A stretch of 64,000 nt of DNA from Obrimoposthia wandeli (taxonomy: Eukaryota). The position numbers and the translations under genes were made by a program. The stretch is from NCBI GenBank assembly GCA_977020255.1, contig CDROCS010002735.1, positions 248,001-312,000 on the forward strand. The letters run 5' to 3'. Below are positions 38,883 to 57,326 of this stretch, piece by piece; positions within the stretch are counted from its first letter, which is position 1, and every line of letters begins with the position of its first letter. The notes beneath the pieces were generated by a model, which saw only the letters and a list, made by a program, of their open reading frames with translations, made no database searches and was not told the origin of the DNA.

Positions 38883-40551
38883 TATTCTTACCTTTATAAG
38901 CATCATCCGCGAGCAAATGGTCATCGTCTATATAATGGAAATTAACCACCAACCCAAGCCACGGGAGCCAAGTAGGATTTATATCTAAGCCAGCTATTCG
39001 TATATTGATATCGATGGCTGAATGATGAAAATAAACATCTAAATAGCCAGTACTGGTTAATGCTTTGCCATAGATTTGCAGCGCGTTACCCAGTGTTGCT
39101 AAAGAAGTGTTGCAGGTTTTCGATAGTGTATTTAACCACAGTGGCTCTTGAGAGAAATGACTAACTGTCGCCAATTCTTCAACCTTTACCAACTGTAACT
39201 TGTTCGCCAAAAAAACCTGCAGTGCACTATCAAGGGGTAGCTTTATCCCTCGACTCAATCGGTATAAGATATGCCAAGGGTTTAGTTGCTGCTCAATAAT
39301 AATCGCTTGATATTCCTCTTGTTTAAGGATGTTAATTAAGAAATAAAAACCAGCACTTTGAGTATAAAACTGTACGTCTTCTGCTCGACTAGAAGTATCT
39401 AATTGAGTAGGTAAATAACTTTTATTTGCTAATTCATAATCTGTTGTAAAACCCTGTTCCTCATTTTTAGAAGCCCGCTTTGGCCTTTCTAGAAGTGGCT
39501 TATTATCTGATAGCTTTGGTAATGTATTTTCAGTTTTGATAGCAACCTTTGCGCTTAATTCATAAATAGCCTGTCCGTTTTTGACAGCTGAGTTATTTGT
39601 GCTCTGCATCACTTCTGTTGATGCTATATTGTGATCAGTATCCACAGCCTCAACGGTAGCATCAATCAAGTTGGGCAATTCTGCTTTGTCTTGGTTTTCA
39701 GCTGGCTTAGTTGTAATTCTAGGTATCGCATTATCCCTATAGAAATAATTAAATAGTTGCTCAAACCACCGGTGCTGGTGCTGTGTGTTTAGCATTATTT
39801 GTGGGTTGTATTGCCATGCGAGTAGGATGATAAGTAAATGGCACAGCTCGCCATTATGAGAGTCAGATAAATGTTTATCGGCGTTGTTATTGAGTAATTC
39901 TTGATAGCTTTTTAATTGTGCGATTGGAACAGAATTTACAGCATGATTATGGCTTAACTTTTTGTAACTAAAGTTTTTTGTAGTCAAACCATCTGTTGTA
40001 AATATTGACCACTGTGTCTGTGCGTATATCGCCTGTGTTAACTCTTTTAAATCATTACGACCTAAACAATTTAAAACTTCGTGCGCTAAATGTCGTGCCA
40101 CCAACGCTTGCAGCAACTTAGGTAATTGCAATATACTTTGCAGTAAGCAATGCTTTATGGCCTGTCGCTTATCTAAGTGCGCTATATTCCAGCTCTGCCA
40201 ATACCATGCTTTATGACCATTGAGTAAATCGGTAATCAAGGCGAGTTCAAGTTCAAAACTATTAGTGAAGTAAACCGCCGCTGCGCTCTGAGCTTGCACA
40301 GATAAACCGGATACAGCGCTTGCTTTTAATTGCATTGCTTGGCTGGTTATTTTCTCTGCTATCGTTTGCCTAGTATCAGCCACATCCAGCTTTTTTATAA
40401 TCACTATATTGGTGTTATCAAATTGCGCACAAAGCTGTGTTTCTATCGCTAACAGGATTTGCTGCTTAAAATCGATATCACCTATTAGCTGCATTTTATC
40501 GATGAGTACATCATCAGTAGCGTTTCGAGAGAAGTTTAATACACTGGTCAT
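38875..40551 (-). CDS. Probable eCIS tape-measure protein (Afp14-like)
   Basis: Position just before the ATPase; helical N-terminus, low-complexity middle, and C-terminus SAGFYFLINIL...IRIAGLDINPTWLPWLGLVVNFHY recalling the xAGLxLL...LPW end of Afp14-family proteins. Confidence 0.55.
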   Translation of the reverse strand: MTSVLNFSRNATDDVLIDKMQLIGDIDFKQQILLAIETQLCAQFDNTNIVIIKKLDVADTRQTIAEKITSQAMQLKASAVSGLSVQAQSAAAVYFTNSFELELALITDLLNGHKAWYWQSWNIAHLDKRQAIKHCLLQSILQLPKLLQALVARHLAHEVLNCLGRNDLKELTQAIYAQTQWSIFTTDGLTTKNFSYKKLSHNHAVNSVPIAQLKSYQELLNNNADKHLSDSHNGELCHLLIILLAWQYNPQIMLNTQHQHRWFEQLFNYFYRDNAIPRITTKPAENQDKAELPNLIDATVEAVDTDHNIASTEVMQSTNNSAVKNGQAIYELSAKVAIKTENTLPKLSDNKPLLERPKRASKNEEQGFTTDYELANKSYLPTQLDTSSRAEDVQFYTQSAGFYFLINILKQEEYQAIIIEQQLNPWHILYRLSRGIKLPLDSALQVFLANKLQLVKVEELATVSHFSQEPLWLNTLSKTCNTSLATLGNALQIYGKALTSTGYLDVYFHHSAIDINIRIAGLDINPTWLPWLGLVVNFHYIDDDHLLADDAYKGKNNA

Positions 40552-40585
40552 ATTATTCCTTTAGCTCATCGCTTTATATTCGATC

Positions 40586-42517
40586 TCAGCGCCTTACACC
40601 AGGTATTGAAAATCCTGTGACACTGAACAGCCTGTTGGGTGTTTTTCGCGTTGCTTGTAAATGCGTAAGCATGACCACCGCGCCTTCATCATCAACATCT
40701 TCTACCCTTAAAGTACCCACCAACTGATCTTCATCATCCATCAACTGTAAGAGTGTACCTATTTGAGCTTCGCGGTTTAAGCTGACCCGTAAAAAGCTTC
40801 CAGGCTCTAACACCTTTGGAGCAGACAGCAAATTGCCGTGTAATATCTCATTAGGATCATCTGCCGCTGCAACGAGTAATGCGGCGCGTATCATATTTCT
40901 TAATGCGCTGTAACTGTGTGTGCTTGCGGTGGCTGATAGCTGTCTAAACCACCACTGCACCAGCGCGATAATAGTGCGCAACGTATTAAACTCATCTGGC
41001 TGCGCTTGCTCAAGTCCTGGCCACTGTTGTGGCTGATCAACGATTAACTGATCAAGTTCAGCGGCTGCCGCCCATTGCAAGCGTAGGGAAGGTGCTATTT
41101 CTCTTAATTGCGTTACTAGACAATGACAGGCTTGATCTAGTTTATTACGCAAGCTTTCTGCATTGCCTCGCAAACGATGGGGAGAGCCAGCCAATAGATC
41201 TTCTAAGGAAATTAATTTTGCGCTTTGCTGTTGATGCGCTAATAGCGATGTTTTGAACGCCGTCTTAAAGAGATCAGGGTCAAAATATGCTGAATTGACA
41301 GCCGCAGGGCTAGTATTCGCTACAGTATGCGTACTCATTTCAAACACACTAGGTGAGCCTTGGGCAATATCCATCAACAGCGCTTTATTGGCGTTAAAAA
41401 GCCCTTGCATGCGCACACTTAATAATGAATGTTCAATTTGAATGGCTTCTTGTAGTTTGTAATTTATGCGCTGTTGGCGGCTTTTAATTAAGCGTTGGAT
41501 ACGGCGTCTATCTGGCAATAATTTGGCATAACTGTGCAGCGCTTGCCAATCACTCATCGCAATATCTAACACGGATTCCATGAAAGGTTCTAGCTCAACG
41601 GGCAGATCTTTATCTTCTAAAGGACAACCTGGCACTAAATCATCAACGCTCGCATAATGTAGGGGCAACAAACTACTAGGCGACCGGTTAAGCGATGTTT
41701 CGCGCACTTTTACATAGCTTATGCCTAAATTGTTATCGAGGATCTGTGCGCGCTGGCGATAATCATTTTCAATTTTTTGCCAATTTTCGCTCACTAAATG
41801 ATTAACCACATGGTAATCGCTTAAACTCTTCAGGCGTTGACTATTTAAAGCACTCAACTGGTTTTGCCCTTCGATGATTTTGTTTTCAACGCTGGCAAGT
41901 TTGGATTGTAAATGCTTTAACCGCCGCTCTTTACTGGTTCTATACTTAACTAGGTTAGTGCGTAGTTTTTGAACGACCCTAATATCATCTTTGATAAAGA
42001 CGCCCGTTTTAAACAGTGCTTCATGGCTATCTTCAGCGGCTGCATTTAAAGCGCCAATATTGGCCAAGCCTTCTAATCTAAAAGTGTTGGGGGTTGTGAA
42101 ATACTCCCCAAAATATTGATTTAACTCACTAGGCTCTTGATAAACATCTTGGTATAAGCTTTCTACATAACTTTTGGTTTTTGCCAGTAAACTTTCATCT
42201 ATATCTACTAACTCAGCTTGCAGTGTTTGGATACCCAATTTAGCTTTTTCAAATAAACTATGTGTCGTATCTACATAATCTAATACTCCAAAACCACCTT
42301 CACCTTTGGCAAACGCGGGCTCATTAATTTTTTCAGCAACCGGAGTATGACGATTTATTTGCGATAACTGATCCTTCAAGTTTAGTTGCTGGCTAAGCTG
42401 CAAATCTTTTAGCAATTCTTGCTGCGCTTTTTCTTTAAGCACCAAATCCTGGTGTCGTAACTGGCTTTGTGCAAAGCTACTTGCTTTTGAAACTTCACTT
42501 TGAAAAAACTTAGCCAT
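40586..42517 (-). CDS. Hypothetical eCIS-associated coiled-coil protein (643 aa)
   Basis: Long ORF co-oriented in the locus with an AAGGA RBS; heptad-rich segments; no recognised family. Confidence 0.7.
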   Translation of the reverse strand: MAKFFQSEVSKASSFAQSQLRHQDLVLKEKAQQELLKDLQLSQQLNLKDQLSQINRHTPVAEKINEPAFAKGEGGFGVLDYVDTTHSLFEKAKLGIQTLQAELVDIDESLLAKTKSYVESLYQDVYQEPSELNQYFGEYFTTPNTFRLEGLANIGALNAAAEDSHEALFKTGVFIKDDIRVVQKLRTNLVKYRTSKERRLKHLQSKLASVENKIIEGQNQLSALNSQRLKSLSDYHVVNHLVSENWQKIENDYRQRAQILDNNLGISYVKVRETSLNRSPSSLLPLHYASVDDLVPGCPLEDKDLPVELEPFMESVLDIAMSDWQALHSYAKLLPDRRRIQRLIKSRQQRINYKLQEAIQIEHSLLSVRMQGLFNANKALLMDIAQGSPSVFEMSTHTVANTSPAAVNSAYFDPDLFKTAFKTSLLAHQQQSAKLISLEDLLAGSPHRLRGNAESLRNKLDQACHCLVTQLREIAPSLRLQWAAAAELDQLIVDQPQQWPGLEQAQPDEFNTLRTIIALVQWWFRQLSATASTHSYSALRNMIRAALLVAAADDPNEILHGNLLSAPKVLEPGSFLRVSLNREAQIGTLLQLMDDEDQLVGTLRVEDVDDEGAVVMLTHLQATRKTPNRLFSVTGFSIPGVRR

Positions 42518-42606
42518 TTCAAATTCCTTGTTTAATTATTGTTGCAATGCTTAAAGTGTTTATCTAAGTTAACCAAATCTTTAGACTCACTTTTAGATGC
42601 TCATTT

Positions 42607-44679
42607 TTATGAGTCGTTGGTAAACTTGACTGAACCTGCCCAGCGCATTAAATTAAGACCACTGCCATCGCCAGGCACACCACCTGCAAGTGTCGCAAAG
42701 GACACGCTGATTGAATCTAGATGTTGACGTTGCACTAAGATAAAGTCATTCATCTCGTTGATAACATCATAATTTTCTTTGAAATCCGCTTCTATTGCGG
42801 CTATTTCAACTTGCAGGTCACTGCGCTGGCGATACAAGCCTGGTGCTGTGCTGTTGTCTTTAGCTGTTTTTATCGCGGCACTTTCAAAGCTTGGAATGTC
42901 TAAACGGTACAAACTGTATGGCCTCGGCAAGCTTTGATCGTTTGTTAATTGCTGTGCGCGCGTATTTATTAAGCGGCTTAAGCTTTGTGTCGTGGTTAAA
43001 GGTGCCGCTTGAGGGTTGGGGACATTTAATTTATCGCGCTGTGTAAACCCACTAAGCTTAGTAAAACTGTTGCTAGGACCTTTTACTTGAAATACGCTGT
43101 TAAACAAGGTGATGGGATCTGCATAGTATTTGCTATTGGTAAGTTGATCTAAATCTCTATCGAGATCCTTATACAAGTGCTCAAATAGATTTTCCCAAGC
43201 ATTGTAGTCTGATTGACAAAGGGCGTATCTGTTTTCAACTTCTTGAATAAGCTGCTGGTCTATTTGAGGAAGTGAGAGTAAGTCAGGTCGATAATTATAC
43301 TCATCAACCGATACCATTAAACGTATTCGCACTTGCTGATAGTGCACTAAATTAACAACACCTCTACCAGCTTCTGCTTGAATTGTGCTTTTTACCGTGC
43401 TGGCAGGTACTGGCACTAATTCGATTTGCATGTCTTTTGGTGCAAAGTGTAAAATGGGCGTTTGCCACTGCAGATCACTGTTTTCACTGCCCGCTATTTG
43501 CGATATTAGTTTCGTGGGAAATGTTGCTCCACTGGGTAAGTAGTCAATACCTAAGTTTTGCGATAGACTTAAATTTACATCTTCGCTAATAGGTATTATT
43601 TGCTTTGCAAGTTGGTGCTCGTAATGGCGTAAAAAGCATTGATGCTCACTGTTCTTTTCACTGAGATAGCGCCCTGCTAGTGCATCTATTTCAACAAGCT
43701 GATCCGCTTCGATTTTAATCAATGCTAACCTTATTGCCCCGTTTTCAGAGCCTTCATCTCTTAAGCTTTCGTTACTTGCGTTATTCGCATCACTTACTTG
43801 TGTGGCGAGTATTTTATTACTCGCACGTTGTGTGCTCATGTCCATTAAATCGACGCTGTCTGAAATAAACTGCAAATTGAGTTTCGCCACGGTTTCAATA
43901 CGACTATCGCGCAGTGAGTTTAACTGTGCTCGATTACAGGCTAAGTTTTGATTATCTTCATCTAATAGCAGTGCACCGCGTTGTAAAGTAATATAGAAAT
44001 ATCCCTTTAATGTGGATGCATTGACTGACTGATTTAAGTTAGGTAATTGGCTAGCCAAATTTAGTGTATCAAAGATATTTGATCCACTGACGTAAGGTGA
44101 TGGATTAGTGGCAATTGAAATACTAGTGCTGATACCTTTACTTGTGTCGGCTCTGGTAATTGAAGACGGCCTCAACGGCAATCGAGTCGAGGTTAAAGGT
44201 ACTGAAGGGCGAAACCCTATTCTTGGACTTAGATCCGTACTAGCATCTGAGTTATCTGTTTCAATCTTAGGCGATAGGTTATTCCCTTTAATCAGGTTAG
44301 TAATAAAATTCTGATTTGGATTTAACGGTACGCTGTGTTGGTAGTTGTCAAATAACTGCTGCCACGAAATAAACATGGGTTGCAGCAGCCGTATTGCACG
44401 ACCATCATGACCTATAGCCACGCCTGCTTGCAGCCTAATATTGGCGTTTCCTGCTTGCTCACTTTGATAATTATCAACACTAATTTCTAGGCCTTCCACA
44501 ATACCTGCTATTTCATCACTGAGTAAACTATCGCAACGATCGTCGACGTAGCGCTGCATTAAATCAAACTCGCGCTCGCTCAAAGCTCTTCCTGCTAGCA
44601 ATTTTATACGCTGTGCTTGATTATCGGTTTGTACGTTATGTAAGTGTATAGGTGGATCCTGATGAATATAGTTACTCAT
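42607..44679 (-). CDS. eCIS fibre/baseplate-attachment-type protein 3
   Basis: N-terminal RIKLLAGRALSEREFDLMQRY...GIVEGLEI, paralogous to the two upstream genes. The ATG at 44679 has a GGAG RBS (track start 44745). Confidence 0.6.
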   Translation of the reverse strand: MSNYIHQDPPIHLHNVQTDNQAQRIKLLAGRALSEREFDLMQRYVDDRCDSLLSDEIAGIVEGLEISVDNYQSEQAGNANIRLQAGVAIGHDGRAIRLLQPMFISWQQLFDNYQHSVPLNPNQNFITNLIKGNNLSPKIETDNSDASTDLSPRIGFRPSVPLTSTRLPLRPSSITRADTSKGISTSISIATNPSPYVSGSNIFDTLNLASQLPNLNQSVNASTLKGYFYITLQRGALLLDEDNQNLACNRAQLNSLRDSRIETVAKLNLQFISDSVDLMDMSTQRASNKILATQVSDANNASNESLRDEGSENGAIRLALIKIEADQLVEIDALAGRYLSEKNSEHQCFLRHYEHQLAKQIIPISEDVNLSLSQNLGIDYLPSGATFPTKLISQIAGSENSDLQWQTPILHFAPKDMQIELVPVPASTVKSTIQAEAGRGVVNLVHYQQVRIRLMVSVDEYNYRPDLLSLPQIDQQLIQEVENRYALCQSDYNAWENLFEHLYKDLDRDLDQLTNSKYYADPITLFNSVFQVKGPSNSFTKLSGFTQRDKLNVPNPQAAPLTTTQSLSRLINTRAQQLTNDQSLPRPYSLYRLDIPSFESAAIKTAKDNSTAPGLYRQRSDLQVEIAAIEADFKENYDVINEMNDFILVQRQHLDSISVSFATLAGGVPGDGSGLNLMRWAGSVKFTNDS

Positions 44680-44708
44680 AAATGTGCTCCGAACAATTAA
44701 CCTAAACC

Positions 44709-47225
44709 CTAAACAGTCATAAGACCCATATCTAAATCGCGCCATTGATTACGTAGTTTTGTGGTCAATTTGAACTCAGTGGTCGCGGCAATCGCCAACC
44801 CTAATTTACGAGTGCTTTTATGTGCTTGTAATAAATACTCATGAAATTTTTGTGTACTTTCATCCTTCAGGATGATGACCATAGTTGACCAAAGCGCTTC
44901 ATCATAGAATACTGGTATTATCGTGGCCATTTGGTTAACCCATAAGCGCAGCTGCGTGTTTGCACCGACTAAATCGCTTACTTGTTTTATAATCCTTTGA
45001 TTACTAAAATCTCTGGCTTTGGCACGCTGTATTACCGTTAAGCTTTCTACATTAGACAGATTTATATTAGACAGATCAGTGGCGCTACTTGCTCGGGTAA
45101 TCGCACTTGGACTTTGCGCCGCTGCTTCCCATTGTCTCCTCAACGAACTACTAAGATCAAAATGACTCGCTTTAGAAGCTATATAGGCAGCAGTATTCAT
45201 TTTAAGCCCTGATTTGATATACTCCTCTACAAAGCTTTGTAGTAATTCACTATGGGCAAGTTCTAATAGCGTTCTCCATACTACATCTTGATATTCTCTT
45301 TCAACTATCAGCAATAACTGGTTGATAAATATGAGAAGATCAGGCATTTCATTTACTAATTCTTGTAACTGACTCGCTGTTCTCTGCGTATTTTCATTTT
45401 CCGCACCTCTAATTCTCACTAGCTGTTCAATGCTAAATAGGCCACCACTGTTATTGCTCAGCTGCGCCTCAAGTGCTTGATTCTCTGTCCGTAGTCGATT
45501 TAGTTGCATAGTGAGCCGATTAGTTAAGTCCCCAGCACTGCTCAATTGTTGTTGCAATCTACTTTGCTCAGTCAAAAGCGTTTCATTATTGGTTTCTAAT
45601 TGCCTAATACTTTGTAGTGCATTTTGCAATTGAATGCTGGTTGGTGAATCATTGCCATCGCTGCCACTCTCGATTTGCTGCAGTAAATTGGTATTTAATA
45701 TTTGTAAGCGGCTATTATCTTCAAGCGCCTGGTTCAGATCAGCGACCAACTGCGAAAAGTCAGCAGGGATCGCATTACTAGGATTCGCTTGCAGGTACCC
45801 TGCGGCTAATACCACCGCACTGACTTGTGTTTCAGCCACTCGGGTTGGGCGGCGCACATACATAACATTGCGCGCTTGAGCCCAAATATCGCGCCAAACA
45901 ATTTGATGAGAGTTGCTAATACTTACAAAAGAATTATTGACAGGCCTTACAACAGCTTCGAAATTACTACCAAAGCTAGTACTTGCATACAACTGCAGTG
46001 CTAGTTCAGGGATGTAGCGCATCTCATCAGTTCTTACTTCATCACTATCATGCTCTAACTGGCGAGCACGATATGCGAACTGATGATCAGACATCGCCAC
46101 CAGCACCATAATATCAACCCCTTTATCTCGTGTGAGATCTATAGGAGCTAACAGTTTACTTTGAGCGATAATAGCGGCTAAATCTGTTTCTCTTACGGGT
46201 GCAATGCTGACATCAAAACTTTGTGGAAAGTAGTTTTGCGAGGTAGTTAATGGATTTATAGCGGCTTTCGGCACGCTGCCATAAGGGGGCAATAAATTAA
46301 AATAATGATGTGCGCTAAAAGAAAAGTCGCGGCTACTTTGCTGTCGAAAATCGAGCACACTAACTAATAATTCTTCATAATGAGTATGCAAATCTTCTTG
46401 TAAACCCGTTTGGCTGTTGGCTTTTCTTAAAGGGCGCTTTAGTAAGCCTTTATCTAGCCAACTGACGCGGCCGTGTTCGATACTAATTATACCTAGCGCT
46501 ACTGCTTCATCTGATATTTCATGTGGTTGGCTGGTATTGCCATTAGTAGTGCTGCCAATTAATTCTGCCACTAAAGCTGCTCGCGTATTTAGATCGCTAG
46601 GTTTTCTATCAATTGCAACGCTATTATCAGCGCTGGCGGTAAAGGTCTTACTGCGCAGTGGCTGTAGTATTATTTCAACTCCTTCACTGTAAGCATTGAA
46701 ATGAAACCCGCGCTGCGCGGCTAAATCTCGCGGGTAAATTTCACTGCTGCCACTGCCTTGCTCAGCATATTGTAAACAAACAGCGTAAAGGCCGCGTGTG
46801 AAGCGTCTAAAATTGTTATTTAAAGCCGCGAGCTGCGCACTGTCATATAAGTTAATTTCTAATTCTGGCGCGTTGCTTGTCTTCTCCATTGCATCTGTAC
46901 TATCACTTGATGAGGTTTTTAACTCTAAGACTCTGCCCGCTGGTGATACAGCTAAACCATTGGTGATGATTAGCTTGCCGTCTTCACTGAGCATTACATC
47001 TAAGCCGCGAACGACACCATAGCCGAGCACTCGCCCAACTTCGCGCAGCCGCTCATCAAGATAGAGCTGATCTCGAATTAAATCTGCCGCTTTGAGTAAT
47101 CTGCCGTCATAATAATTGGTGCGCGACAGTTTGGGATCAATACTGGCTGCACCGGAATATAGTGGCGCTTGTTGATTTGCATTGAGTGATGAATTGACGG
47201 GTGAAAACTCTGAGTTATTTGACAT
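44709..47225 (-). CDS. eCIS fibre/baseplate-attachment-type protein 2 with coiled coil
   Basis: RTNYYDGRLLKAADLIRDQLY...GYGVVRGLDV...ITNGLAVSPAGRVL, the motif typical of Afp13-like N-termini; long heptad stretch. The ATG at 47225 has a GAGGA RBS (track start 47252). Confidence 0.65.
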   Translation of the reverse strand: MSNNSEFSPVNSSLNANQQAPLYSGAASIDPKLSRTNYYDGRLLKAADLIRDQLYLDERLREVGRVLGYGVVRGLDVMLSEDGKLIITNGLAVSPAGRVLELKTSSSDSTDAMEKTSNAPELEINLYDSAQLAALNNNFRRFTRGLYAVCLQYAEQGSGSSEIYPRDLAAQRGFHFNAYSEGVEIILQPLRSKTFTASADNSVAIDRKPSDLNTRAALVAELIGSTTNGNTSQPHEISDEAVALGIISIEHGRVSWLDKGLLKRPLRKANSQTGLQEDLHTHYEELLVSVLDFRQQSSRDFSFSAHHYFNLLPPYGSVPKAAINPLTTSQNYFPQSFDVSIAPVRETDLAAIIAQSKLLAPIDLTRDKGVDIMVLVAMSDHQFAYRARQLEHDSDEVRTDEMRYIPELALQLYASTSFGSNFEAVVRPVNNSFVSISNSHQIVWRDIWAQARNVMYVRRPTRVAETQVSAVVLAAGYLQANPSNAIPADFSQLVADLNQALEDNSRLQILNTNLLQQIESGSDGNDSPTSIQLQNALQSIRQLETNNETLLTEQSRLQQQLSSAGDLTNRLTMQLNRLRTENQALEAQLSNNSGGLFSIEQLVRIRGAENENTQRTASQLQELVNEMPDLLIFINQLLLIVEREYQDVVWRTLLELAHSELLQSFVEEYIKSGLKMNTAAYIASKASHFDLSSSLRRQWEAAAQSPSAITRASSATDLSNINLSNVESLTVIQRAKARDFSNQRIIKQVSDLVGANTQLRLWVNQMATIIPVFYDEALWSTMVIILKDESTQKFHEYLLQAHKSTRKLGLAIAATTEFKLTTKLRNQWRDLDMGLMTV

Positions 47226-47227
47226 AT

Positions 47228-48181
47228 CTAAGATTCCTCTTGGCTCAACCAAGTCAGTGCATCCGCGCTATTTACAAAAGGCCTGACTAAATTATTCAAA
47301 GCGATGTGATGCGGGTTTATCACAGGACTAATCATTGGTAACTGATCGGTGCGAATCGCAATCTCGATATGCGCCAATAAAGTTTTGGCTATTTCAGCTG
47401 AATTGCCTTTAACAGCCAGTGCTTGTGGATCTGCTGCTAAGGCATAAACTAACCCGCTGTGATGCTGCGCACGCTTTTTAGCAACTCCTGTTAGCTGAGC
47501 TAAATAATCCGTTTCAGTGTCGTTGAGTAGCTCTGTTATTGGGATTTTTTGTTGCTGATGTGCATTCCAAGACCAAGGGATTTGCTCGGTATTTAATAGC
47601 GCAGCATTAATTTCTAGCAACACCCCTTCGGTAGTGCGACTTGGCGAAATAGGATCGGTACCTGCGTTTACTTTTCTGGCGAGTATCGGTTGTAAACCAC
47701 TAGGGCAGTCACGTTGTCGCATAGTGATGAGTAGGCTTAGGCTATCTTGTGCGTCATTTAGTCCGTTTAATAACGCGGCTTTACCTTGCTCATCAGCTAC
47801 TTGCGATGCCAGCCATTGGTTTAAATTGATGCAATAAGGCTCAAAGCTGTTCACCTCACGCCCTAATCCATCAATACCGACCCCGGGAGTAACTAGCAAT
47901 TTAACCGTCACATCATCGACACTAGGTTCCACGCCTTCGTGCTCTAACTGCACAGCAAACCCGAGCACTGTGCCGGCGCCATGTAGCCAATAATCGTGCC
48001 TATTTAAGCGACGCCGATGATAGCCTTGCTCAGCATTCGTGGCCTCGACACCGAGTAACATTCCCGGTACAAAATTAACTCTTTGTAAAGGGCTTTGAAA
48101 ATCGCTATCTTGCGCTAAGATTTCTTGAGATACACCGTTTGGGGTTAAAAGATGCGCTTTATCGAAATTATTCATGCTCAC
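47228..48181 (-). CDS. eCIS fibre/baseplate-attachment-type protein 1
   Basis: RVNFVPGMLLGVEATNAEQGYHRRRL...HGAGTVLGFAV...VTPGVGIDGLGREV. Confidence 0.65.
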   Translation of the reverse strand: MSMNNFDKAHLLTPNGVSQEILAQDSDFQSPLQRVNFVPGMLLGVEATNAEQGYHRRRLNRHDYWLHGAGTVLGFAVQLEHEGVEPSVDDVTVKLLVTPGVGIDGLGREVNSFEPYCINLNQWLASQVADEQGKAALLNGLNDAQDSLSLLITMRQRDCPSGLQPILARKVNAGTDPISPSRTTEGVLLEINAALLNTEQIPWSWNAHQQQKIPITELLNDTETDYLAQLTGVAKKRAQHHSGLVYALAADPQALAVKGNSAEIAKTLLAHIEIAIRTDQLPMISPVINPHHIALNNLVRPFVNSADALTWLSQEES

Positions 48182-48191
48182 TTATTCCTGT

Positions 48192-50750
48192 TTATCCCTG
48201 AAAAGAAGCCAGTGCAATAGGGTTGTGTAAGATACCTTCTCTACCTAAATACGTATCATTCAATGTGACTTGACGATAGTGCGGCTGCTGCTCTAAATAA
48301 GTATCAATACCCAATAACGGCGATAGCCCCAATACAAAAGGATGATCTGTTTCTAATAACTGATAAGTAATATGTGCAGGCAGCCATTGTGCTAGCGTCT
48401 GCTCAATTTGTGCTATCGCACTTCTTGCTGATGCGTGCACCACCACACTCACTTGATAGGCATAGTGCTCGTACAAAGCTGTTACTTGCTCATTTTGCTG
48501 TTTTGATGCAAGCTGTGGGGCGAACAGTGCTAAGAACTGCGCACCTTGATCTTCCGATAAAATAAGTGACTCACCGACGATAGAATTACCACTTTGCGAG
48601 ACACCTAGCGTCAATGGGTGCTTATCATCATCCATGTTAATGCCCAGTATTGTAGCGAGTGTTCTTCTTAGCCGAAAATTCTCGACTGCAATCACATGCC
48701 CTTTTGCCACAGCGCCATCGGTGACAACATCTAGTGCTAAACAAAGTCCTGCATGAGTGCCGCGCTTTTTCTGTAGTTCAGGTTGAGCACTTAACCAGTT
48801 GCGCGCCCGATGGGTTGGCCAGTAATCAGGTAGTGAACATGCCAGCATTTTTGCCAGTATTGGCAACATATTTTGTGGCGCGCTAAGTGGGTTTAAGAGC
48901 GCTTCACTATAGACAATACGCTCTTCTATGGGTGTCATCATCCCTTCAAAACTAGCTAGCATTCGCTCGCGTATATCAGCGCCATTGGCAGCGATATGCT
49001 CCTCAGTGGTTGAATTCTCAGTGGTTTGATTATTATAGATATCAGCTGCGCCATACTGCTGGTGAAAATGACTGGGCAAATACGCTTGTTGCCACGAGAA
49101 CCGCTCTTGATGTACGCGTATTGCACTAATGGCAGGTGAATGTCTCCCATCTCCTGTCATGCTTATTTTGATCTCTAGGTATCGCCCTCGCAACTCTCGT
49201 ATTTCACCAGTGTTATGTTGAATTAAAATTTCATACAAACCTTGGCTTTTTTTCGATGTGTTGGTGTTATTTGTATGTATGCTGTCTGCGTTTAAAATAT
49301 CAGTACTTAAACTAGCCTCTCTTGATTCAGGTGCGCCAAACCTCCCTTGATAGAAAGGGATTTCAGAGGCAATTTTTTGGTAATGTAATGGCGGCTGTTC
49401 GATCCATTTTTTACTGGAGCTGTGCTCGTCATTGTAAACCTTTAACGCTATTTTAAGCGTGCATCCCTCTGGTATCATGGCTTCTATATACATGCGATGC
49501 CACAGGGTATCCAACTGCTGTGAATCTAATGCTTTGTTAAGAGTAGTGCTTCCCTTGGTAATAAATTGACTTTGCTGTAGTGGGTATAATTTTTTAATTT
49601 CGTGCTGGGCTATATATCTAGCGCTGTTTATCTGATCTTTTCCCATGCCATCACTGAACACACCGCTGACAAAACCTGCACTTCCTTGGCTGTGCTGCGG
49701 GTAGCGTTTGGCTTCTAAAACAATCTCTTTTAGATTTTCTTGCACACTTTGCTCTTCGTCATTATCTATATTGACATTATGTAAATCAGGTACTTGAATC
49801 ACCGGGAGATCTTTATCAATACTGCCTTCTTCAAGTACTAACATTAGCGCCAGCCGTCTTTGTGCCATCACGCTCAAGCTGATAACAAATGGTATTATAG
49901 GCAGTGTGAAAATCTGTATTGTTTGGGTTGAATCATCGCTTAGTGCACGTATAAATAAACTTTGGCTAAAATTATTAAGTTCGTAAACCAAGATATATAA
50001 CTGTGTTTGATCGCCACACAGCCCCAGCACTTTGTAATTGTCAGGCAGTTCCTGTTGCCAATGTACTCGCAAGGGGTTTAAATTGATTTTTTGCGGTTCA
50101 AAGGCTGTTGGATCTGCGGTATAGCTTTGTGGCAGCGGCTCGCCTTGGCACAAGGTTAAAAACGGCTCAGTGATCAGCCATATTCTGTTGTGCTGATCCA
50201 CCCAGCTAAACTGCGCTGCTTGCCCTAATGAGCATTGGCTTTGCCATTTACGCGCAAGATGCACCACCAATAATCCGTGCTCTGTTACGCCATCACTAAA
50301 AGGAGCTGCAATACGTCCATCGCCACCTAAATTCAAATGCACGAACCGGCTGTTATTCGGTGCTTGTACTGGGGCTAAGCTCAATTGTGCAAGGGAATCA
50401 GTGCCTAGCGATGATTCTTCACTTCTCTCCTGACTAGATGCCTCATTAAATTGCAATGCACTAGCCAACACCTTATTAGTGTCACTTATTGGCCATTGTG
50501 CGCTGTAGAGAATATTTTTGTGATCATCACTCAATACACCAAGCTGGCCAAAACTATCTTCAATCACAGCAGTGTTATTCTTCCAAGTTTGTATTGCCTT
50601 TGCAAAGCCAACATTTGAAAAGCGCGGCGTTTGCTGTGCATTTAAGCGAAATAGCTGACATTGAGAATCCCACTGACATAGCTCTCTTGCGTCTGCCTTG
50701 AAATCATCAGCACAATTAAGGAGTTGAAACTTAACACCGTTACTATCCAT
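48192..50750 (-). CDS. Phage tail/baseplate protein with C-terminal P2 gpI-like domain (Afp12-like, TIGR02242-type)
   Basis: C-terminal YLPSHF...RERMLASFEG...LNPLSAPQNMLPILA...QKKRGTHAGL...WLPAHIT; lies directly after baseplate J; large N-terminal extension. Confidence 0.72.
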   Translation of the reverse strand: MDSNGVKFQLLNCADDFKADARELCQWDSQCQLFRLNAQQTPRFSNVGFAKAIQTWKNNTAVIEDSFGQLGVLSDDHKNILYSAQWPISDTNKVLASALQFNEASSQERSEESSLGTDSLAQLSLAPVQAPNNSRFVHLNLGGDGRIAAPFSDGVTEHGLLVVHLARKWQSQCSLGQAAQFSWVDQHNRIWLITEPFLTLCQGEPLPQSYTADPTAFEPQKINLNPLRVHWQQELPDNYKVLGLCGDQTQLYILVYELNNFSQSLFIRALSDDSTQTIQIFTLPIIPFVISLSVMAQRRLALMLVLEEGSIDKDLPVIQVPDLHNVNIDNDEEQSVQENLKEIVLEAKRYPQHSQGSAGFVSGVFSDGMGKDQINSARYIAQHEIKKLYPLQQSQFITKGSTTLNKALDSQQLDTLWHRMYIEAMIPEGCTLKIALKVYNDEHSSSKKWIEQPPLHYQKIASEIPFYQGRFGAPESREASLSTDILNADSIHTNNTNTSKKSQGLYEILIQHNTGEIRELRGRYLEIKISMTGDGRHSPAISAIRVHQERFSWQQAYLPSHFHQQYGAADIYNNQTTENSTTEEHIAANGADIRERMLASFEGMMTPIEERIVYSEALLNPLSAPQNMLPILAKMLACSLPDYWPTHRARNWLSAQPELQKKRGTHAGLCLALDVVTDGAVAKGHVIAVENFRLRRTLATILGINMDDDKHPLTLGVSQSGNSIVGESLILSEDQGAQFLALFAPQLASKQQNEQVTALYEHYAYQVSVVVHASARSAIAQIEQTLAQWLPAHITYQLLETDHPFVLGLSPLLGIDTYLEQQPHYRQVTLNDTYLGREGILHNPIALASFQG

Positions 50751-50847: not shown

Positions 50848-53052
50848 TCAACACACATCAGGTATCACTGGCACTGCAATTGGTGTAGCGCCATTTACAC
50901 TATGATTACCATCATCAGGTGCAACAATGGCCGGTACTTTGGCCTTAGTTTGGCTATCTCCTGATATCGCATCAACTTGCATAATTTGCGGCAGCTGATA
51001 AGCAAGTAATGAAATTTTTTGCACGCTTTGCCACTGCCCTTCTTTTTCCAAGCGGAAAAGGGTTAGCTCACCTACAGCTAATACCCCCGCCACTCTTGCT
51101 GCAACAGCTTTTAGCTCATTTACTTCCAGATCACGTCCCATCGGCCAGCCATTACCACTTGGCCCTGCTGGACTGGTTATCCAAAGATAGTGCAAGAGTG
51201 CTTTATTGACGGCATTAAGTGTTTGCGTGATTACGCTTGCATCTAGCACTTGAACCACTAAGCCGACGGCTACACCGATAAATTCTGGACTGAGCACATA
51301 CAGTTCAGTACCTAATAAAGTTCTACTATCAAGGTATTGATATACATCTCTTAACAGGCCTGCACTTGGCCGGTTTATTTCGCCAAAAGCAATGTTTGAA
51401 GGGGGTAATACAAAAACACTCACCACACCTGGCACCTTTAGCTGCACAGTACCAGTGCTGCTACCAGGCTGTAAGCCTTGGATAACTTCAGCACGCACCA
51501 CAGGATTAACAGGGTTTGCTAAGGCCAGTTGAATAAAATCATCTTGGGTAACGGCGCGATTACGGTGATTTAAATGCGCTGGAATGCGCTGTTCAGCACT
51601 GGCGACACTTTCGCCATCTCGACCATTGGCGGTGGGCCAATCATGGCGCACTAAAAACTTGCTACTGGCATTAACGATTTGTGAAATACTTGCAGCGCTT
51701 AAGTTGCCTACTATACCGCCCCCATGGCGATAGTATTTCGCACGAATACGGCTCTTCACGCTGGGCCTTTTTCCTTTTAGGCCATCACCAAAAATCACCA
51801 GCGCACTGCCACTATCAAAACGATATACTTTGTCATCTGCACCACTTGCATTAAAATCATTCACTTGCTGCCATAGCTTAAAATCACCAACTTCACTCAC
51901 TTCTATCTCTAAGCTTGCTGCATCAATATTGGAAATATTTAAGCTATAACTTTGTTCAGGCAAGCCATTTGCAATCGCGATCATTTGATCTCTAATTACC
52001 CCTTGCGCTACCACATCAACGGCATTAATACTGATATAACTCAAACTGAAATCGTTTTCTAGTGGTGCTGATAAGCGAATCCAAAACATGCTTTGTTCTG
52101 CACTAATATGTGCCGGTGGCTCAGGTGGCGTATTAGCATAGCCCGCGTATTGTGGATCAGTGCTAAATTGTGATTTTAGGATGGCACTGTTATTAGGCAA
52201 ACGTAACTTCACTACGCCAGTTACGCGCCCACCTTTAGAGGTATCAGCTACGATTTCTAAAGGGATGTAGGTGGTTTTATGTTGATCAGCACTTTGCTGC
52301 CAGGCAATTTCCCAGCGCAGTTCTCTTGGTGCTAATTGCATTGAAAGCGCTTTTTTTTCTGATATATCAGTCACACTAGCGCCTTGTTCATCACCCGCAG
52401 GAACAATGCCGATACTAATAATCTGTGCGCTAAGGTTGTGTAAAATATTCTCTTTTTGCGGCAATTGCTTAGTGTGCGGTAAATAAGCTAATAGATAAAA
52501 ACACTTATCTAAACTGTGATTTAGATCTAATTTGTCAGTGGCAGCATCAAAACTGCGTGGCACAAATGCGCTTACTTTGGTGTTATAGAGCGTTTGTAAT
52601 GCATTGATGTTGATATCTAAAGAGGCAAGTTGTGCTTCACTTATGCGCTCTTTAATCATCACTGCTAGTTCTAGTGGTAACGACTGCAGCTCACCCACTG
52701 TGCTAAAAGTGACATTGCCAGCACTTAACTGGGTTTCGTGTTGTAACAAAGGCACTAACTGTGAGCCTCTACCAATTTTAGTATCAATAGAAACGATACC
52801 TGTTGCAGGCAGCGCAGGCCTGCGCGGCAATTGCAAAAGGTTTAAAAAAGCTTGTCTTTGCCGCTCAGGGATTAAGTTTGCACGGTATATCACTGACTCT
52901 GTCATCCACGCGAATAAATCCACCAACGCATATAACGGATCCCCCTCAGTTAACTGGCCCATCTCTGGTATATGATGCTCTAGCCGCTCCCTGGCCTCTT
53001 TTACTAGATCATCAAACTTGCGATCATCTAATGATGTTACTGGAATAGTCAT
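50848..53052 (-). CDS. Baseplate J / gp6-like wedge protein (Afp11-like, TIGR02243-type)
   Basis: SLDDRKFDDLVKEA...EGDPLYALVDLFAWMTESVIYRANLIPER; VIFGDGLKGKRP; YRHGGGIVGN; NRAVTQDDFIQLA; GWPMGR. Confidence 0.9.
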   Translation of the reverse strand: MTIPVTSLDDRKFDDLVKEARERLEHHIPEMGQLTEGDPLYALVDLFAWMTESVIYRANLIPERQRQAFLNLLQLPRRPALPATGIVSIDTKIGRGSQLVPLLQHETQLSAGNVTFSTVGELQSLPLELAVMIKERISEAQLASLDININALQTLYNTKVSAFVPRSFDAATDKLDLNHSLDKCFYLLAYLPHTKQLPQKENILHNLSAQIISIGIVPAGDEQGASVTDISEKKALSMQLAPRELRWEIAWQQSADQHKTTYIPLEIVADTSKGGRVTGVVKLRLPNNSAILKSQFSTDPQYAGYANTPPEPPAHISAEQSMFWIRLSAPLENDFSLSYISINAVDVVAQGVIRDQMIAIANGLPEQSYSLNISNIDAASLEIEVSEVGDFKLWQQVNDFNASGADDKVYRFDSGSALVIFGDGLKGKRPSVKSRIRAKYYRHGGGIVGNLSAASISQIVNASSKFLVRHDWPTANGRDGESVASAEQRIPAHLNHRNRAVTQDDFIQLALANPVNPVVRAEVIQGLQPGSSTGTVQLKVPGVVSVFVLPPSNIAFGEINRPSAGLLRDVYQYLDSRTLLGTELYVLSPEFIGVAVGLVVQVLDASVITQTLNAVNKALLHYLWITSPAGPSGNGWPMGRDLEVNELKAVAARVAGVLAVGELTLFRLEKEGQWQSVQKISLLAYQLPQIMQVDAISGDSQTKAKVPAIVAPDDGNHSVNGATPIAVPVIPDVC

Positions 53053-53184: not shown

Positions 53185-53565
53185 CTATTCATTGAGCGCA
53201 AAAGAAAATTGCATTACTTGCTGTTGTACGTGATTTTTTTGCCGATAGTGAATATCCACCACTAATTGATGCAATTGCTGTGAATCGATATTGACTAATA
53301 CCTGTAATACGTTAATACGCGTTTCCCAGCGACGAATAGATTCACTGATAATATCTGCGATTAAGCTGCGAGTGGTTTGGTTATTAGGATGATGTAGGAA
53401 CGATTTTAAACCAGCACCAAATTCTGGGCGCATTAGGCGTTCGCCTGGACTGGTGAGTAAAATATTCCAAATCACTTGGTTAATGCTTTGTGTGTCACTC
53501 GCCCAAGGTAAACGTTGCTGTGCATCTAATCCGAATAAGCTAAAGCTTACATCCATTGTTTCCAC
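53185..53565 (-). CDS. gp25/GPW-family baseplate sheath-initiator (Afp9-like)
   Basis: INQVIWNILLTSPGERLMRPEFGAGL...IRRWETRINV. Confidence 0.92.
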   Translation of the reverse strand: METMDVSFSLFGLDAQQRLPWASDTQSINQVIWNILLTSPGERLMRPEFGAGLKSFLHHPNNQTTRSLIADIISESIRRWETRINVLQVLVNIDSQQLHQLVVDIHYRQKNHVQQQVMQFSFALNE

Positions 53566-53605: not shown

Positions 53606-55396
53606 TTAAGGACAATTACGTACTTTTTGGATAGCCCAAGGGATCCAACGCATAAATATATTGAGTAATTTCATAATAATCATCAATAAAATCATGGCGC
53701 AAATAGTGATCACTGGAATGCTAAAACTAATGCTAAAACCTAAACAGGCACTAAAACGATTCCCTTTATTGCTCTCTTTAAATTCTAAATCAGGGGACAC
53801 CCTTTCAACCGCATCCGCTAAGGATTTGGGCGTCATAAAAGTAACGCCTTTTGCGACACCTCTTTTTAAATCGCTCAATTCTGGTAGCTGTATAACACTT
53901 GGGCGCACCGCTTCAGGGTCCATAGGGTTGACTACCCTAAATCTTTTACTTGCAGGGCCCCAAGCGATTTTCTCTTTTTGGCAGTGATCTAAATAGCGTA
54001 CAAAAGGCTTTACGAAATACACCGCATCCTGTTCTTGAGAGAACTTAGCTATTGGTAGTGCGTCCGCTAAAATTTTAGCCGCTTGTTGCGATCTAATTAC
54101 TAATAGTTGGCGCAGTGAACCCGCTTGCGACTCTGTTATATACAAAGCACTATCATTACTATTATCAGTGCTAACATTAGGTAAATATTCAACGTTTAGA
54201 CCCTGCTCACCACTGACTATACTGGCATCTTTTTCGTGTTGATCTAACAGTGCGAACCAAGCGATGAGGTCACTGTAGTTATTTTCAAGATAGCTTAGTA
54301 AACTTTGCTGCCTCGCTGTTTTTGTTAAGTTATCATGTTGATCAATCGTTATTTGCTGATAAAAATAAAACTGCGCAATTTGACCACGTAATGCTTCGTT
54401 CGCAGAGTTAGTCGCATCATAGAGGTGGAAGCTTTCTACGAAGGTGCGCAATAAACTAATAAAGGCACTGTTTGCCTGATGATTTTGACACACTAAACCA
54501 GTGTCGACATGCCATACAAAAAGCTGACAAGGATGATCGACTAAATCATTAAAAGTACCAGTACAATCGCAAGATGGACCACTACTTTGACCATCCCAGC
54601 TACCAAATGGCCATTGGTGATTGGCTAGCATTCCGCTAGCAGCTGTTCTGTTATTGCGCGTATTGTTTTTTTTGGTAAGTTCGCTACCCACTTCTGCTTG
54701 TGTATTACCTCCTTCGTTCTCTAAAGGGTCACGCTGTTTAAAAATGCTTTGTACCGCACTGCCAATCCCTTTTCTAAACACTTGGCTAGCAGAAGGTGCT
54801 TGCAATGATAAATCAACACTACCCCCTAGAGGCAAATAACCAGACAGTAAGCAGCGCTTTTTTCCTTTAGTGTTGTCGACGGTAATAAGCTGTGCATGCA
54901 GAGGATGCGTTTTTTCACCACTGTATAAAGGCTCTACCGCTTTGGCTTCGATTAATTTATTATTTAGCAACCTTTTATATTGATCAGGTTCTTCAATATT
55001 ACTGGTTTGCGCTACCCAACCATTTGCCGCTCCCTCGTGTATTTGCCAGCTTTGGTAATTATCTTCTGTGCCTTTTCTAATCACCATTCCAGCCGATAGC
55101 ACTTTGGTTGGATCAAAAGCTGCTTGGCCTATTACATCACACTGAATTTCAGCACAAACCATATAAAATGTGCGATGAATGGGCAGTCGTAAATTCACAA
55201 AATCTTGAGCTTTAGCGCCAAATCTATCCTCCTTGCGCCAATCTTGGGCGTGAGTTCCCGTTAGCTGACCGGCGATCACCTGTTGCTGAAAACGACTAAC
55301 AAACTCTTCATCAAGGTAGCGATGCAGCATTGTGCCATCGTGCTCCCCTGCATAGAAAGGACTTTTAATAACTGCTTTATGCTGTTTATTTACCAT
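53606..55396 (-). CDS. Hypothetical eCIS protein (596 aa) with hydrophobic C-terminal helix, in the usual PAAR position
   Basis: The ATG at 55396 overlaps the gp5-like stop (ATGGTAA; track start 55459). N-terminal LRLPIHRTFYMVCAE; C-terminal FSISFSIPVITICAMILLMIIMKLLNIFMRWIPW. Confidence 0.7.
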   Translation of the reverse strand: MVNKQHKAVIKSPFYAGEHDGTMLHRYLDEEFVSRFQQQVIAGQLTGTHAQDWRKEDRFGAKAQDFVNLRLPIHRTFYMVCAEIQCDVIGQAAFDPTKVLSAGMVIRKGTEDNYQSWQIHEGAANGWVAQTSNIEEPDQYKRLLNNKLIEAKAVEPLYSGEKTHPLHAQLITVDNTKGKKRCLLSGYLPLGGSVDLSLQAPSASQVFRKGIGSAVQSIFKQRDPLENEGGNTQAEVGSELTKKNNTRNNRTAASGMLANHQWPFGSWDGQSSGPSCDCTGTFNDLVDHPCQLFVWHVDTGLVCQNHQANSAFISLLRTFVESFHLYDATNSANEALRGQIAQFYFYQQITIDQHDNLTKTARQQSLLSYLENNYSDLIAWFALLDQHEKDASIVSGEQGLNVEYLPNVSTDNSNDSALYITESQAGSLRQLLVIRSQQAAKILADALPIAKFSQEQDAVYFVKPFVRYLDHCQKEKIAWGPASKRFRVVNPMDPEAVRPSVIQLPELSDLKRGVAKGVTFMTPKSLADAVERVSPDLEFKESNKGNRFSACLGFSISFSIPVITICAMILLMIIMKLLNIFMRWIPWAIQKVRNCP

Positions 55397-56031
55397 ATAT
55401 TTCCAGCTCCTGGCGTATAAGATGAACTCACTACTGAATTGGTAATTAAGGTGTCGCATTTAACGACACCTGAAAAATCACTCATAGCCGCATTGACTTT
55501 TACCATGCTCGCGTTGACCTCAACGGTGCTCGCAGCTTCTATTTCAACTTTCGCTGTACTACTAATTTTTATACCGCTAGTCGATAGCATTATCCTCTCG
55601 TTATCTTTTTCAATAGTGATTTCACCTGCACCGTGTTCATCAATTTCTATTCGATATCCACTGCTCGTTTGTAAGGTAATTTTAGGGCTTTGTGCATCAT
55701 CTAAGATAACCTTTGAACCGCCGGGCGTAATCAACGCATATTTATCTTCCACTTCTTGTGCATCACCTGCATGGCTATCGCTGCCGCTCCACAAAGCGCC
55801 TAACACCACCGCTATTTCAGGTGATATAAATGAAATAACTACTTGCTCATCAACTTTTGGTAAAAAGCTAATTCCATACCCTGCGCCTGCAGAATTTGTC
55901 ATACACGCTGCCCACAATGTCATGCCTGTGCTGTGTAACATCACTTGAATGCGCCCACGCCTCTCGGGGTCTTGATTATTGGAGACTATCCCTAAATGCA
56001 ACGCTTGCATTGCGCCCAATTGTTGACTCAT
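55390..56031 (-). CDS. gp5/gpV-like spike protein (OB fold plus short beta region; C-terminal part of a split VgrG/Afp8)
   Basis: GIVSNNQDPERRGRIQV...WAACM...AGAGYGISFLPKVDEQVVISF...VVLGALWS; ends VVKCDTLITNSVVSSSYTPGAGNIW. Confidence 0.88.
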   Translation of the reverse strand: MSQQLGAMQALHLGIVSNNQDPERRGRIQVMLHSTGMTLWAACMTNSAGAGYGISFLPKVDEQVVISFISPEIAVVLGALWSGSDSHAGDAQEVEDKYALITPGGSKVILDDAQSPKITLQTSSGYRIEIDEHGAGEITIEKDNERIMLSTSGIKISSTAKVEIEAASTVEVNASMVKVNAAMSDFSGVVKCDTLITNSVVSSSYTPGAGNIW

Positions 56032-56089: not shown

Positions 56090-57178
56090 CTAGCTCAGGT
56101 TCCAGCTATCTTTATGAACTTTCAGCTGTGTTACATACCCATCTTGCGAACTATAAACATGCCGGCAATGTACTACTTGATAAATACCTTGTAACCTGCG
56201 CGATACGCCCTTCAAATCCACTTCTTTACCACTGCACAATGCTGTATTACCGCGACAGCTAATATCACCGTGTAAAAACTGTTTAGCGCGTTGCTCAAAG
56301 CATGCTTTAGCCCATGCATTCGCTTCTGTTTGATTGCGTGCAAAAGTTGGAATGGCGATTTGCTCACCTTGCCAGGTTAAATCTTGCAACACCTGTGCCG
56401 CGCTTTGTTGCGCTGCTCTAGTAGCGTAATTGGCACTTTGCGCGTTAACCGCAACATCATCCTCCAAACTATAGCCTTGCACTATCAACTGCTTAAACTG
56501 ATGATTGATATCCGCAATAATACGTATTTTTTTAGCATTGCCTTGCGCATCAATCACGATGGGCTCGGGGTCTGGCTGTTCTTTTTTTATACTTAATGTG
56601 CCTTCTATTAACCTTAAAGCGAGATCAAAGGGAGCAATTAAGCGCATCATAAACGCTAAATCACTTTCGTTTATTTGGTGCCAAGTGCTAACGGCACTGG
56701 GGATGGACACTTGGGCCTGTAAACCTGCTTGTGATGCTATTTGCGTGATCACTTGCTGTAAATCTTGATCTTCGTACACTTGATTACGCCGCGCTCGTAT
56801 TAAATGATGTAGGCAGTCTTCTGCTAAAATAGTCAGCTGTGGTGCCCCGCTGCCATAGCTTTCTTCTAAAGCAGTTATTTCACCGTTAAACAGCAATTTT
56901 TCAGCCGACATATGTCCTTCATCTGGCATATTTACACTAATGTTTTGGCCTATTGCGAGCGTTTGAAAAGCAAAACCAGTCGCTGAACCGGTGCTTTCAC
57001 CACGCCAATTACTCAATCTAAGCTCTAAGCTACTCATTCCTGATAATGGCAAGCTCACTTGCATATTGAGTAGTGCTTCTTGTAAGTCATCACGCACCTG
57101 CTGATCTATATGTATACGTGGCCGAATATTGATAATTCCACTGTGTTGCGCTGCGCTATCATTTTGCTGATTAGTCAA
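56090..57178 (-). CDS. gp27/late-control-D-like baseplate hub (N-terminal part of a split VgrG/Afp8)
   Basis: LFNGEITALEE, LTILAED, HQINESDLAFMMRL, GDISCRGNTALCSGKEVDLKGVSRRLQGIYQVVHCRHVYS..DGYVT. Confidence 0.85.
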   Translation of the reverse strand: MTNQQNDSAAQHSGIINIRPRIHIDQQVRDDLQEALLNMQVSLPLSGMSSLELRLSNWRGESTGSATGFAFQTLAIGQNISVNMPDEGHMSAEKLLFNGEITALEESYGSGAPQLTILAEDCLHHLIRARRNQVYEDQDLQQVITQIASQAGLQAQVSIPSAVSTWHQINESDLAFMMRLIAPFDLALRLIEGTLSIKKEQPDPEPIVIDAQGNAKKIRIIADINHQFKQLIVQGYSLEDDVAVNAQSANYATRAAQQSAAQVLQDLTWQGEQIAIPTFARNQTEANAWAKACFEQRAKQFLHGDISCRGNTALCSGKEVDLKGVSRRLQGIYQVVHCRHVYSSQDGYVTQLKVHKDSWNLS

Positions 57179-57326
57179 AGCTTAGCCGCTCTTCCCGCTC
57201 ATTATTGATGGCAATAAACTCGGCTGTTTGCTGTTCCTGCTCATCACTTGCGTTCACCGCTAATGGCTGCTGTAATACCTGTGGCGCTGTAACTTGTGTT
57301 ACTAATTCGTTAATAATTAATGGCAT
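57171..57326 (-). CDS. Small Afp6-like protein (51 aa), not in the ORF track
   Basis: Hand translation: MPLIINELVTQVTAPQVLQQPLAVNASDEQEQQTAEFIAINNEREERLSFD*. GAGG RBS; its TAA overlaps the TTG of the hub gene; the MPxxIxELV start recalls Afp6-family proteins. Confidence 0.7.
   Translation of the reverse strand: MPLIINELVTQVTAPQVLQQPLAVNASDEQEQQTAEFIAINNEREERLSFD

Follow-up and report, generated by a model that had tools for sequence, protein, structure and literature searches.

We describe here a conserved protein, encoded immediately beside the spike gene of a contractile-injection operon, that ends in a predicted membrane helix. The operon lies on a 64,000-nucleotide stretch of DNA (contig CDROCS010002735.1, positions 248,001 to 312,000 of the forward strand, from the Obrimoposthia wandeli assembly GCA_977020255.1; the whole stretch is referred to as the window, and all positions are those of the window unless stated otherwise). 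The gene, at 53606..55396 on the minus strand, encodes a 596-amino-acid (aa) protein and is found between the genes for a gp5-like spike and a gp25-like baseplate wedge protein. We are confident that it is a real and strongly constrained structural gene of the spike or baseplate, specific to one subtype of extracellular contractile injection system (eCIS), and that its product has a true transmembrane-type C-terminus and is neither a PAAR protein nor a tape measure. More tentatively, and with a confidence short of even, we favour the view that the protein is a spike or baseplate subunit anchored by its C-terminal tail in the inner membrane of the producing cell, where it would dock or nucleate the machine.

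Results

The longest open reading frame (ORF) containing the gene runs from 53606 to 55459 on the minus strand and has a capacity of 617 aa; the ATG at 55396 gives the 596-aa product. This start codon forms part of the sequence ATGGTAA (55390..55396, minus strand), in which the start of the gene overlaps the stop codon of gp5, as a sequence-only reading of the window had noted, and a GGAG motif is located at 55407-55410, 10 nucleotides (nt) upstream of the ATG. The arrangement recurs in relatives, with a 7-nt overlap of the form ATGGT[AG][AG] in 40 of 78 related loci and most of the remainder spaced within ~13 nt. Along with the homologues described below, which keep the same position in at least 83 loci, these features support the conclusion that the 596-aa protein is a real conserved component that is translationally coupled to gp5.

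The most distinctive part of the protein is its C-terminus. Residues 553-587 (53636..53740, minus strand) constitute a predicted transmembrane-type helix, with a 20-residue hydrophobic core between Pro561 and Arg583-Trp584. Kyte-Doolittle hydropathy averaged over 19 residues reaches its maximum of 2.65 at residues 556-574, the only segment of the protein above 1.6, and the maximum for every other operon protein is 2.05 or less. The hydrophobic C-terminus that had been noticed from the letters of the window is thus upheld, and it is a property of the family: the terminal segment scores at least 2.33 in all 82 locus copies, is the single hydrophobic segment in 79 of the 82, and persists in 165 of 167 full-length cluster representatives, in spite of strong N-terminal divergence among them. 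When conservation was computed for each region across 82 sequences, the helix was the best-conserved block of the protein (0.75, compared with 0.78 for the tube protein). It carries near-invariant Ser, Pro, Thr and Asn residues which, together with this high conservation, fit helix-helix packing. The helix is followed by an aromatic belt, W-[LI]-P-[WY], and then by a basic tail with a net charge of ~+2.5. No N-terminal signal sequence was found in the protein, and the helix, which falls within the last ~50 residues, is the sole one that is hydrophobic. It is therefore well supported by sequence that the predicted helix is a genuine transmembrane-type segment and that the protein has the layout of a C-tail-anchored membrane protein.

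Homologues of the 596-aa protein are numerous and broadly distributed. A word search returned 46 relatives, all unnamed and without Pfam domains, and when 1.84 billion cluster representatives were searched with a profile, 1286 matched at E ≤0.001 and 923 of these at E ≤1e-10, so that the family comprises at least 1286 clusters as defined at 50% identity. A scan of one genome per species identified 291 loci that carry a member. The closest relative, at 88% identity, is from a metagenome-assembled genome (MAG) of the Oceanospirillaceae, and members occur across four phyla, among Gamma-, Beta- and Alphaproteobacteria, Desulfobulbales and other Thermodesulfobacteriota, Holophagaceae and Planctomycetota. 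Without exception, the 83 loci examined have the gene between gp5 and gp25, with their remaining genes in identical order, and members that share only ~25% identity keep this position. Loop insertions account for a spread in protein length from 499 to 654 aa.

One of these 83 loci, and no other, has an insert between the two genes. In this locus (L080), from a Candidatus Tenderia MAG, an AT-rich segment (L080:11687-12317) falls exactly between the homologue of the 596-aa protein and gp25. Two ORFs overlap in this segment: one of 139 aa, which carries a Tse2 ADP-ribosyltransferase toxin domain (E 6.7e-12), and an acidic one of 72 aa, which may encode the immunity protein of the Tse2-like toxin. 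An ORF with a DUF559 (endonuclease-like) domain occurs inside the same operon (L080:17387-17773), and this second insertion suggests that the Tenderia operon has taken up mobile cassettes.

Annotated families gave no account of the 596-aa protein. It has no Pfam or NCBIfam match at E up to 0.1, PAAR included, and no PHROG match; an NCBIfam row for RhaS (E 0.029) was discarded as noise, since it scored 13.8 bits where the cut-off is 288. Sequence searches of the PDB, with the single sequence and with a 149-sequence profile, returned nothing meaningful.

We modelled the window protein with AlphaFold2 from 31 sequences (predicted local distance difference test, pLDDT, 76) and a distant member, P0096, from 149 sequences (pLDDT 86, predicted template modelling score 0.84). 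Both models contain a beta-sandwich, built from N-terminal strands and from strands near residues 460-490, into which an alpha/beta domain is inserted, and in both the sandwich is followed by a linker of lower confidence and then by the terminal helix. Neither model had a match in the PDB or BFVD at E ≤0.001 by Foldseek. A comparison with 48,161 chains using VIA-align gave a top Z of 6.9, with a root-mean-square deviation of 3.4-3.5 over ~122-127 residues, and the top matches were generic macroglobulin- and immunoglobulin (Ig)-like sandwiches, a level that reflects a common arrangement and is no sign of relationship. The N-terminal domain of BtaeB, a type VI secretion system (T6SS) effector of Bacteroides, also matches both models, tied with complement domains, and we treat it as a lead only. 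An Afp14-like tape measure, which would be a long, extended and mostly helical chain scaling in length with the tail, was considered and rejected, given that the models are compact and globular and the differences in length reside in loops.

Conservation and model confidence are unevenly distributed along the chain. The N-terminal beta-rich part, residues 1-192 (54821..55396, minus strand; conservation 0.52-0.61, pLDDT mostly >85), forms the Ig/macroglobulin-like sandwich of the models together with the strands at 460-490. It is followed by a variable insert specific to the clade of the window, residues 193-250 (54647..54820, minus strand), which has a conservation of 0.10 and a pLDDT <50 and is gapped in most homologues. 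Residues 251-455 are conserved at 0.31-0.43, and this region includes the Cys/His clusters SCDCTG, HPCQ and CQNH (residues 275-306; 54479..54574, minus strand) to which the sequence-only reading had drawn attention. The strings are present as described, yet the region is variable, being gapped or different in most homologues; the clusters are not conserved, and we rejected them as a PAAR-like metal site for this reason. Conservation rises again to 0.55-0.64 over residues 456-552, including the linker that joins the globular part to the helix (residues 486-552; 53741..53941, minus strand), for which model confidence is low: in the window model much of the linker has a pLDDT <50, and the deeper model gives it 63-78.

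That no PAAR gene accompanies the spike, a claim first made from the window alone, held in every set that we searched. No PAAR or PAAR-like Pfam family was found in 74 window ORFs of 51-260 aa (E 0.01) or among the larger operon proteins. With the ORFs of the 83 related loci labelled through homology to the proteins of the window, there was no PAAR among the 110 unlabelled ORFs (≥60 aa) inside the operon spans, and none in the precomputed Pfam tables of 5 loci. The description of the 596-aa gene as occupying the PAAR slot is only approximate, since the PAAR gene of Afp comes after gp25. Genes for PAAR proteins (Afp10, T4 gp5.4, T6SS PAAR) adjoin the spike and gp25 genes, and there is no such gene in this locus. 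Compared with PAAR, the 596-aa protein is ~6x larger, shows no sequence or profile match, has no conserved His/Cys metal site in a small beta cone, and bears a membrane helix; on these comparisons it is not a member of the PAAR family.

Among the eCIS subtypes defined by Chen et al. 2019, the locus agrees with IIb. In that study (PMC6899500), subtype IIb is marked by one Baseplate_J gene combined with a split VgrG, and no other eCIS subtype lacks afp10/PAAR. Here, afp8 is split into a gp27-like and a gp5-like ORF (Phage_GPD and Phage_base_V matches, respectively), this split occurs together with a single afp11 and an afp12-like gene, and afp10 is absent. The absence of PAAR is therefore a property already published for the subtype. 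Conserved genes for which no domain is known are also reported there for the lineage II subtypes, and the 596-aa protein is one of the unexplained subtype-specific genes of subtype IIb.

The operon itself spans the minus strand from ~64000 down to 32172. It begins with a 239-aa protein, a 734-aa sheath, a tube protein, a second sheath-like protein (508 aa) and another tube protein; the cap gene, which is Pvc16_N in relatives, lies just outside the window. These are followed by a CIS_tube-domain protein, a 51-aa ORF, the gp27-like hub, the gp5-like spike and the 596-aa protein, and then by gp25, a single Baseplate_J gene, an Afp12-like protein, five proteins without a family match, an AAA ATPase, a 1173-aa eCIS_core-domain protein and a TPR protein. 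The 51-aa ORF (57171..57326, minus strand) is located between the CIS_tube gene and the gp27-like gene, the start of which it overlaps, and ORFs of 53-57 aa occur at this position in the related loci L001-L003, L084 and L086. By gene position alone it is at the place expected for afp6, the product of which, as Afp6/Cis6, is the spike plug in the thylakoid contractile injection system (tCIS) and AlgoCIS, and we consider it the candidate plug. The earlier suggestion that the 596-aa protein replaces the plug is consequently unlikely, since this small ORF already holds the Afp6 position.

The gp27-like hub (362 aa; 56090..57178, minus strand; Phage_GPD E 2.7e-9, VgrG_rel E 5.6e-28) supplies one half of the split VgrG. 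The other half, the gp5-like spike (213 aa; 55390..56031, minus strand; Phage_base_V E 2.8e-18), has an OB domain and a beta-helix and aligns with the spikes of AlgoCIS, tCIS and Afp over their C-terminal halves. Across the 83 loci the spike is best conserved in its last ~30 residues (55390-55480, minus strand), which end in SYTPGAGNIW. The last gp5 codons are dual-coding with the ATG-GTx start of the 596-aa protein, so part of this conservation is attributable to the overlapping start codon. Downstream of the 596-aa gene are the gp25-like wedge protein (53185..53565, minus strand; GPW_gp25 E 2.4e-21), the single Baseplate_J (gp6/Afp11-like) gene (50848..53052, minus strand; Pfam match), which is also single in nearly all related loci, and the Afp12-like protein (48192..50750, minus strand), identified by a profile match to Tail_P2_I.

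The five consecutive proteins without a Pfam match (317, 847, 712, 643 and 558 aa; 38875-48181, minus strand) include two, of 317 and 847 aa, that nearly every related locus has conserved. By eye, those of 643 and 847 aa appear to be rich in coiled coils, and they could include the missing tape measure or fibres. At the end of the operon (32172-36727, minus strand), the 1173-aa protein downstream of the AAA ATPase carries an eCIS_core domain (formerly DUF4157) at residues 157-233 and is directly followed by the 344-aa TPR protein, and these two are likely the effector module of the locus. The remainder of the window (553-31000, both strands) holds ordinary chromosomal genes, including aquaporin (MIP), PdxJ, a MerR regulator and the purine-catabolism genes for HIUase, OHCU decarboxylase and ureidoglycolate lyase. 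Flanked by such genes, the operon is embedded in a chromosome rather than in an obvious prophage.

Discussion

Membrane tethering in the producer and insertion into the membrane of a target remain the two leading readings of the 596-aa protein, and sequence alone does not separate them. In the scheme that we tentatively prefer, where the membrane entered, the partners, the copy number and the role in firing are all inferred, a soluble body of ~500 residues would be connected through the conserved linker of ~55 residues to the transmembrane helix at the extreme C-terminus. The helix would insert into the producer's inner membrane after translation; since so hydrophobic a helix leaves the ribosome only when translation ends, and since the operon has no evident chaperone, partition into that membrane is what we would expect of it. 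Inserted helices could then oligomerise via their conserved polar face (Ser, Thr, Asn) while the cytoplasmic bodies bind gp5 and the baseplate, such that the baseplate is docked or nucleated on the membrane. Subtype IIb machines would, by this mechanism, be assembled at the cell envelope and perhaps fired from it.

A mirror-tree test on 60 loci, using partial correlations, bears on the proposed partners. The test recovered known contacts (gp6 with Afp12, 0.32; gp27 with gp5, 0.27), and for the 596-aa protein the partial correlation was highest with the Afp12-like protein (0.32), ahead of that with the 317-aa protein (0.29) and that with gp5 (0.23). It was zero or negative with the tube, the sheath and, on the cap side, the 239-aa protein encoded within the window. 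Such values can be confounded by similar evolutionary rates, and we regard them as weak evidence that would place the protein in the baseplate.

Several known proteins illustrate how a contractile machine can be held at a membrane. TssL of the T6SS is C-tail-anchored, binds the baseplate and is inserted by YidC. It resembles the 596-aa protein in having a cytoplasmic body with a single C-terminal transmembrane helix and in having its gene next to that for the gp25/TssE homologue, which raises the possibility of a functional analogy; the 596-aa protein, however, has no DotU/TssL profile match, its modelled body is rich in beta-strands rather than a helical bundle as in TssL, and the locus lacks the TssM and TssJ partners. 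In Anabaena, the tCIS protein Cis13 is bound to the baseplate and its C-terminal helix enters the membrane, and deletion of this helix frees the particles (PMC8894136). There too, a C-terminal helix of a baseplate-bound protein positions the machine at a membrane, yet Cis13 is a fibre-like trimer on the baseplate's periphery and tCIS keeps a PAAR-like Cis10, whereas the 596-aa gene lies between spike and gp25 in a locus without PAAR; the likeness that we note is one of architecture. Membrane proteins of contractile-injection clusters have also been linked with membrane association or firing in haloarchaea (Hbor_38620; PMC11566945), in Streptomyces (CisA; PMC12237407) and in SalCIS (SalCis19). 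These differ from the 596-aa protein both in gene position and in make-up, CisA being bitopic with a periplasmic domain, Hbor_38620 having six helices and SalCis19 a hydrolase domain. It is because cluster-encoded membrane proteins go with in-cell anchoring in several systems that we prefer docking at the producer's membrane.

A number of observations weigh against such docking. Fibre-like paralogues together with a Tail_P2_I adaptor, a set typical of released, target-binding particles (PMC12923769), are still present in the operon, and no envelope-spanning partner or peptidoglycan hydrolase was seen among the operon proteins. If the helix were a passive anchor, one would not expect conservation within the protein to peak there, and the net positive tail that follows the helix lends no support to a topology with the C-terminus outside. 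The mirror-tree signal, as noted, is weak and possibly a product of shared evolutionary rates.

The main rival explanation is that the protein is instead a spike-tip module in the place of PAAR, the helices of which are driven into the target membrane upon contraction, a possibility that we hold to be on the unlikely side. As part of this explanation, one or three copies would attach to the gp5 trimer at its conserved C-terminal end, and the helices, shielded inside the baseplate prior to firing, would then aid penetration or form a conduit. In its favour, PAAR is absent from the window and from the related operons, in agreement with the main text of Chen et al. 2019. The 596-aa gene follows gp5 with translational coupling, gp5 is best conserved in its terminal residues, and so conserved a helix suits an element active on membranes better than it does an anchor. 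In T6SS, prePAAR effectors bear transmembrane helices at the spike tip, and the Tse2-like toxin cassette directly after the gene in L080 is placed like the effector cassettes that follow vgrG or PAAR genes in T6SS loci. BtaeB, which is an effector carried on a VgrG spike, has an N-terminal domain to which the beta-sandwich bears a weak similarity, although at a Z of 6.9 this match is tied with macroglobulin domains. On the other hand, no chaperone gene is evident that could keep the helix out of the producer's own membrane, three copies of a 65 kDa protein would blunt the tip rather than sharpen it, and a conserved 55-residue linker is unneeded in a tip cap. The conservation of the gp5 terminus is explained in part by dual coding, and the 596-aa protein has neither a PAAR-like fold nor a conserved metal site.

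Quite unlikely, in our estimation, is that the protein is a membrane-bound assembly scaffold absent from the finished particle, or a pore-forming effector or adaptor that is loaded on the spike as conserved cargo. The evidence for a membrane helix serves this explanation as well as it does an anchor, the toxin cassette of L080 adjoins the gene, and assembly of the T4 hub has long been described as membrane-associated. Effectors are normally variable, however, and the position of this gene is invariant across four phyla; no toxin or enzyme domain was detected in the protein in the Pfam, NCBIfam and PHROG scans, and the locus already has a candidate effector in the 1173-aa eCIS_core-domain protein. 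Least probable of all is an internal hub component, in which a helix bundle would be buried in the gp27/gp5 cavity or the tube lumen, like a plug or the end of a tape measure, and kept outside membranes before firing: the gene does sit among hub genes, the helix is about as conserved as the tube protein, and lineage II has no afp14 (tape measure) according to Chen et al. 2019 (PMC6899500), but the models are compact globular domains with no long helical rod, the family varies in length by loop insertions, the plug position is already filled, the protein has no positive partial correlation with the tube proteins, and the length, aromatic belt and basic flank of the helix are those of a bilayer-spanning segment.

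We found no characterised subtype IIb or PAAR-less system in the searchable literature, and in that literature, which for Chen et al. 2019 means the main text, no description of the 596-aa protein, its terminal membrane helix or its invariant position. Although the machine is of a known kind, the protein forms a new family, one whose mechanism is testable and undecided. It is conceivable, if on balance doubtful, that subtype IIb is a class apart, made up not of PAAR-tipped free particles but of machines with a spike module that has its own conserved transmembrane helices. Were this true, the helices could pre-insert the tip into the producer's inner membrane, which would amount to a minimal T6SS-like docking without TssJLM, or could alternatively be a device for membrane entry in the target, and in either case the task would be performed by a family for which neither Pfam nor PDB sequences nor solved folds offer a detectable relative.

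Altogether, this study suggests that an uncharacterised class of machines contacts a membrane in an undescribed way. Subtype IIb is widespread, with 291 species-level genomes and at least 1286 protein clusters, and its hosts include methanotrophs, degraders of aromatic compounds, sulfate reducers and marine heterotrophs. With its membrane helix and its place beside the spike, this core protein offers a testable handle on membrane contact without PAAR, and bears on whether subtype IIb machines are released or anchored to the cell, a distinction that matters for their ecology and for the re-engineering of eCIS as delivery tools.

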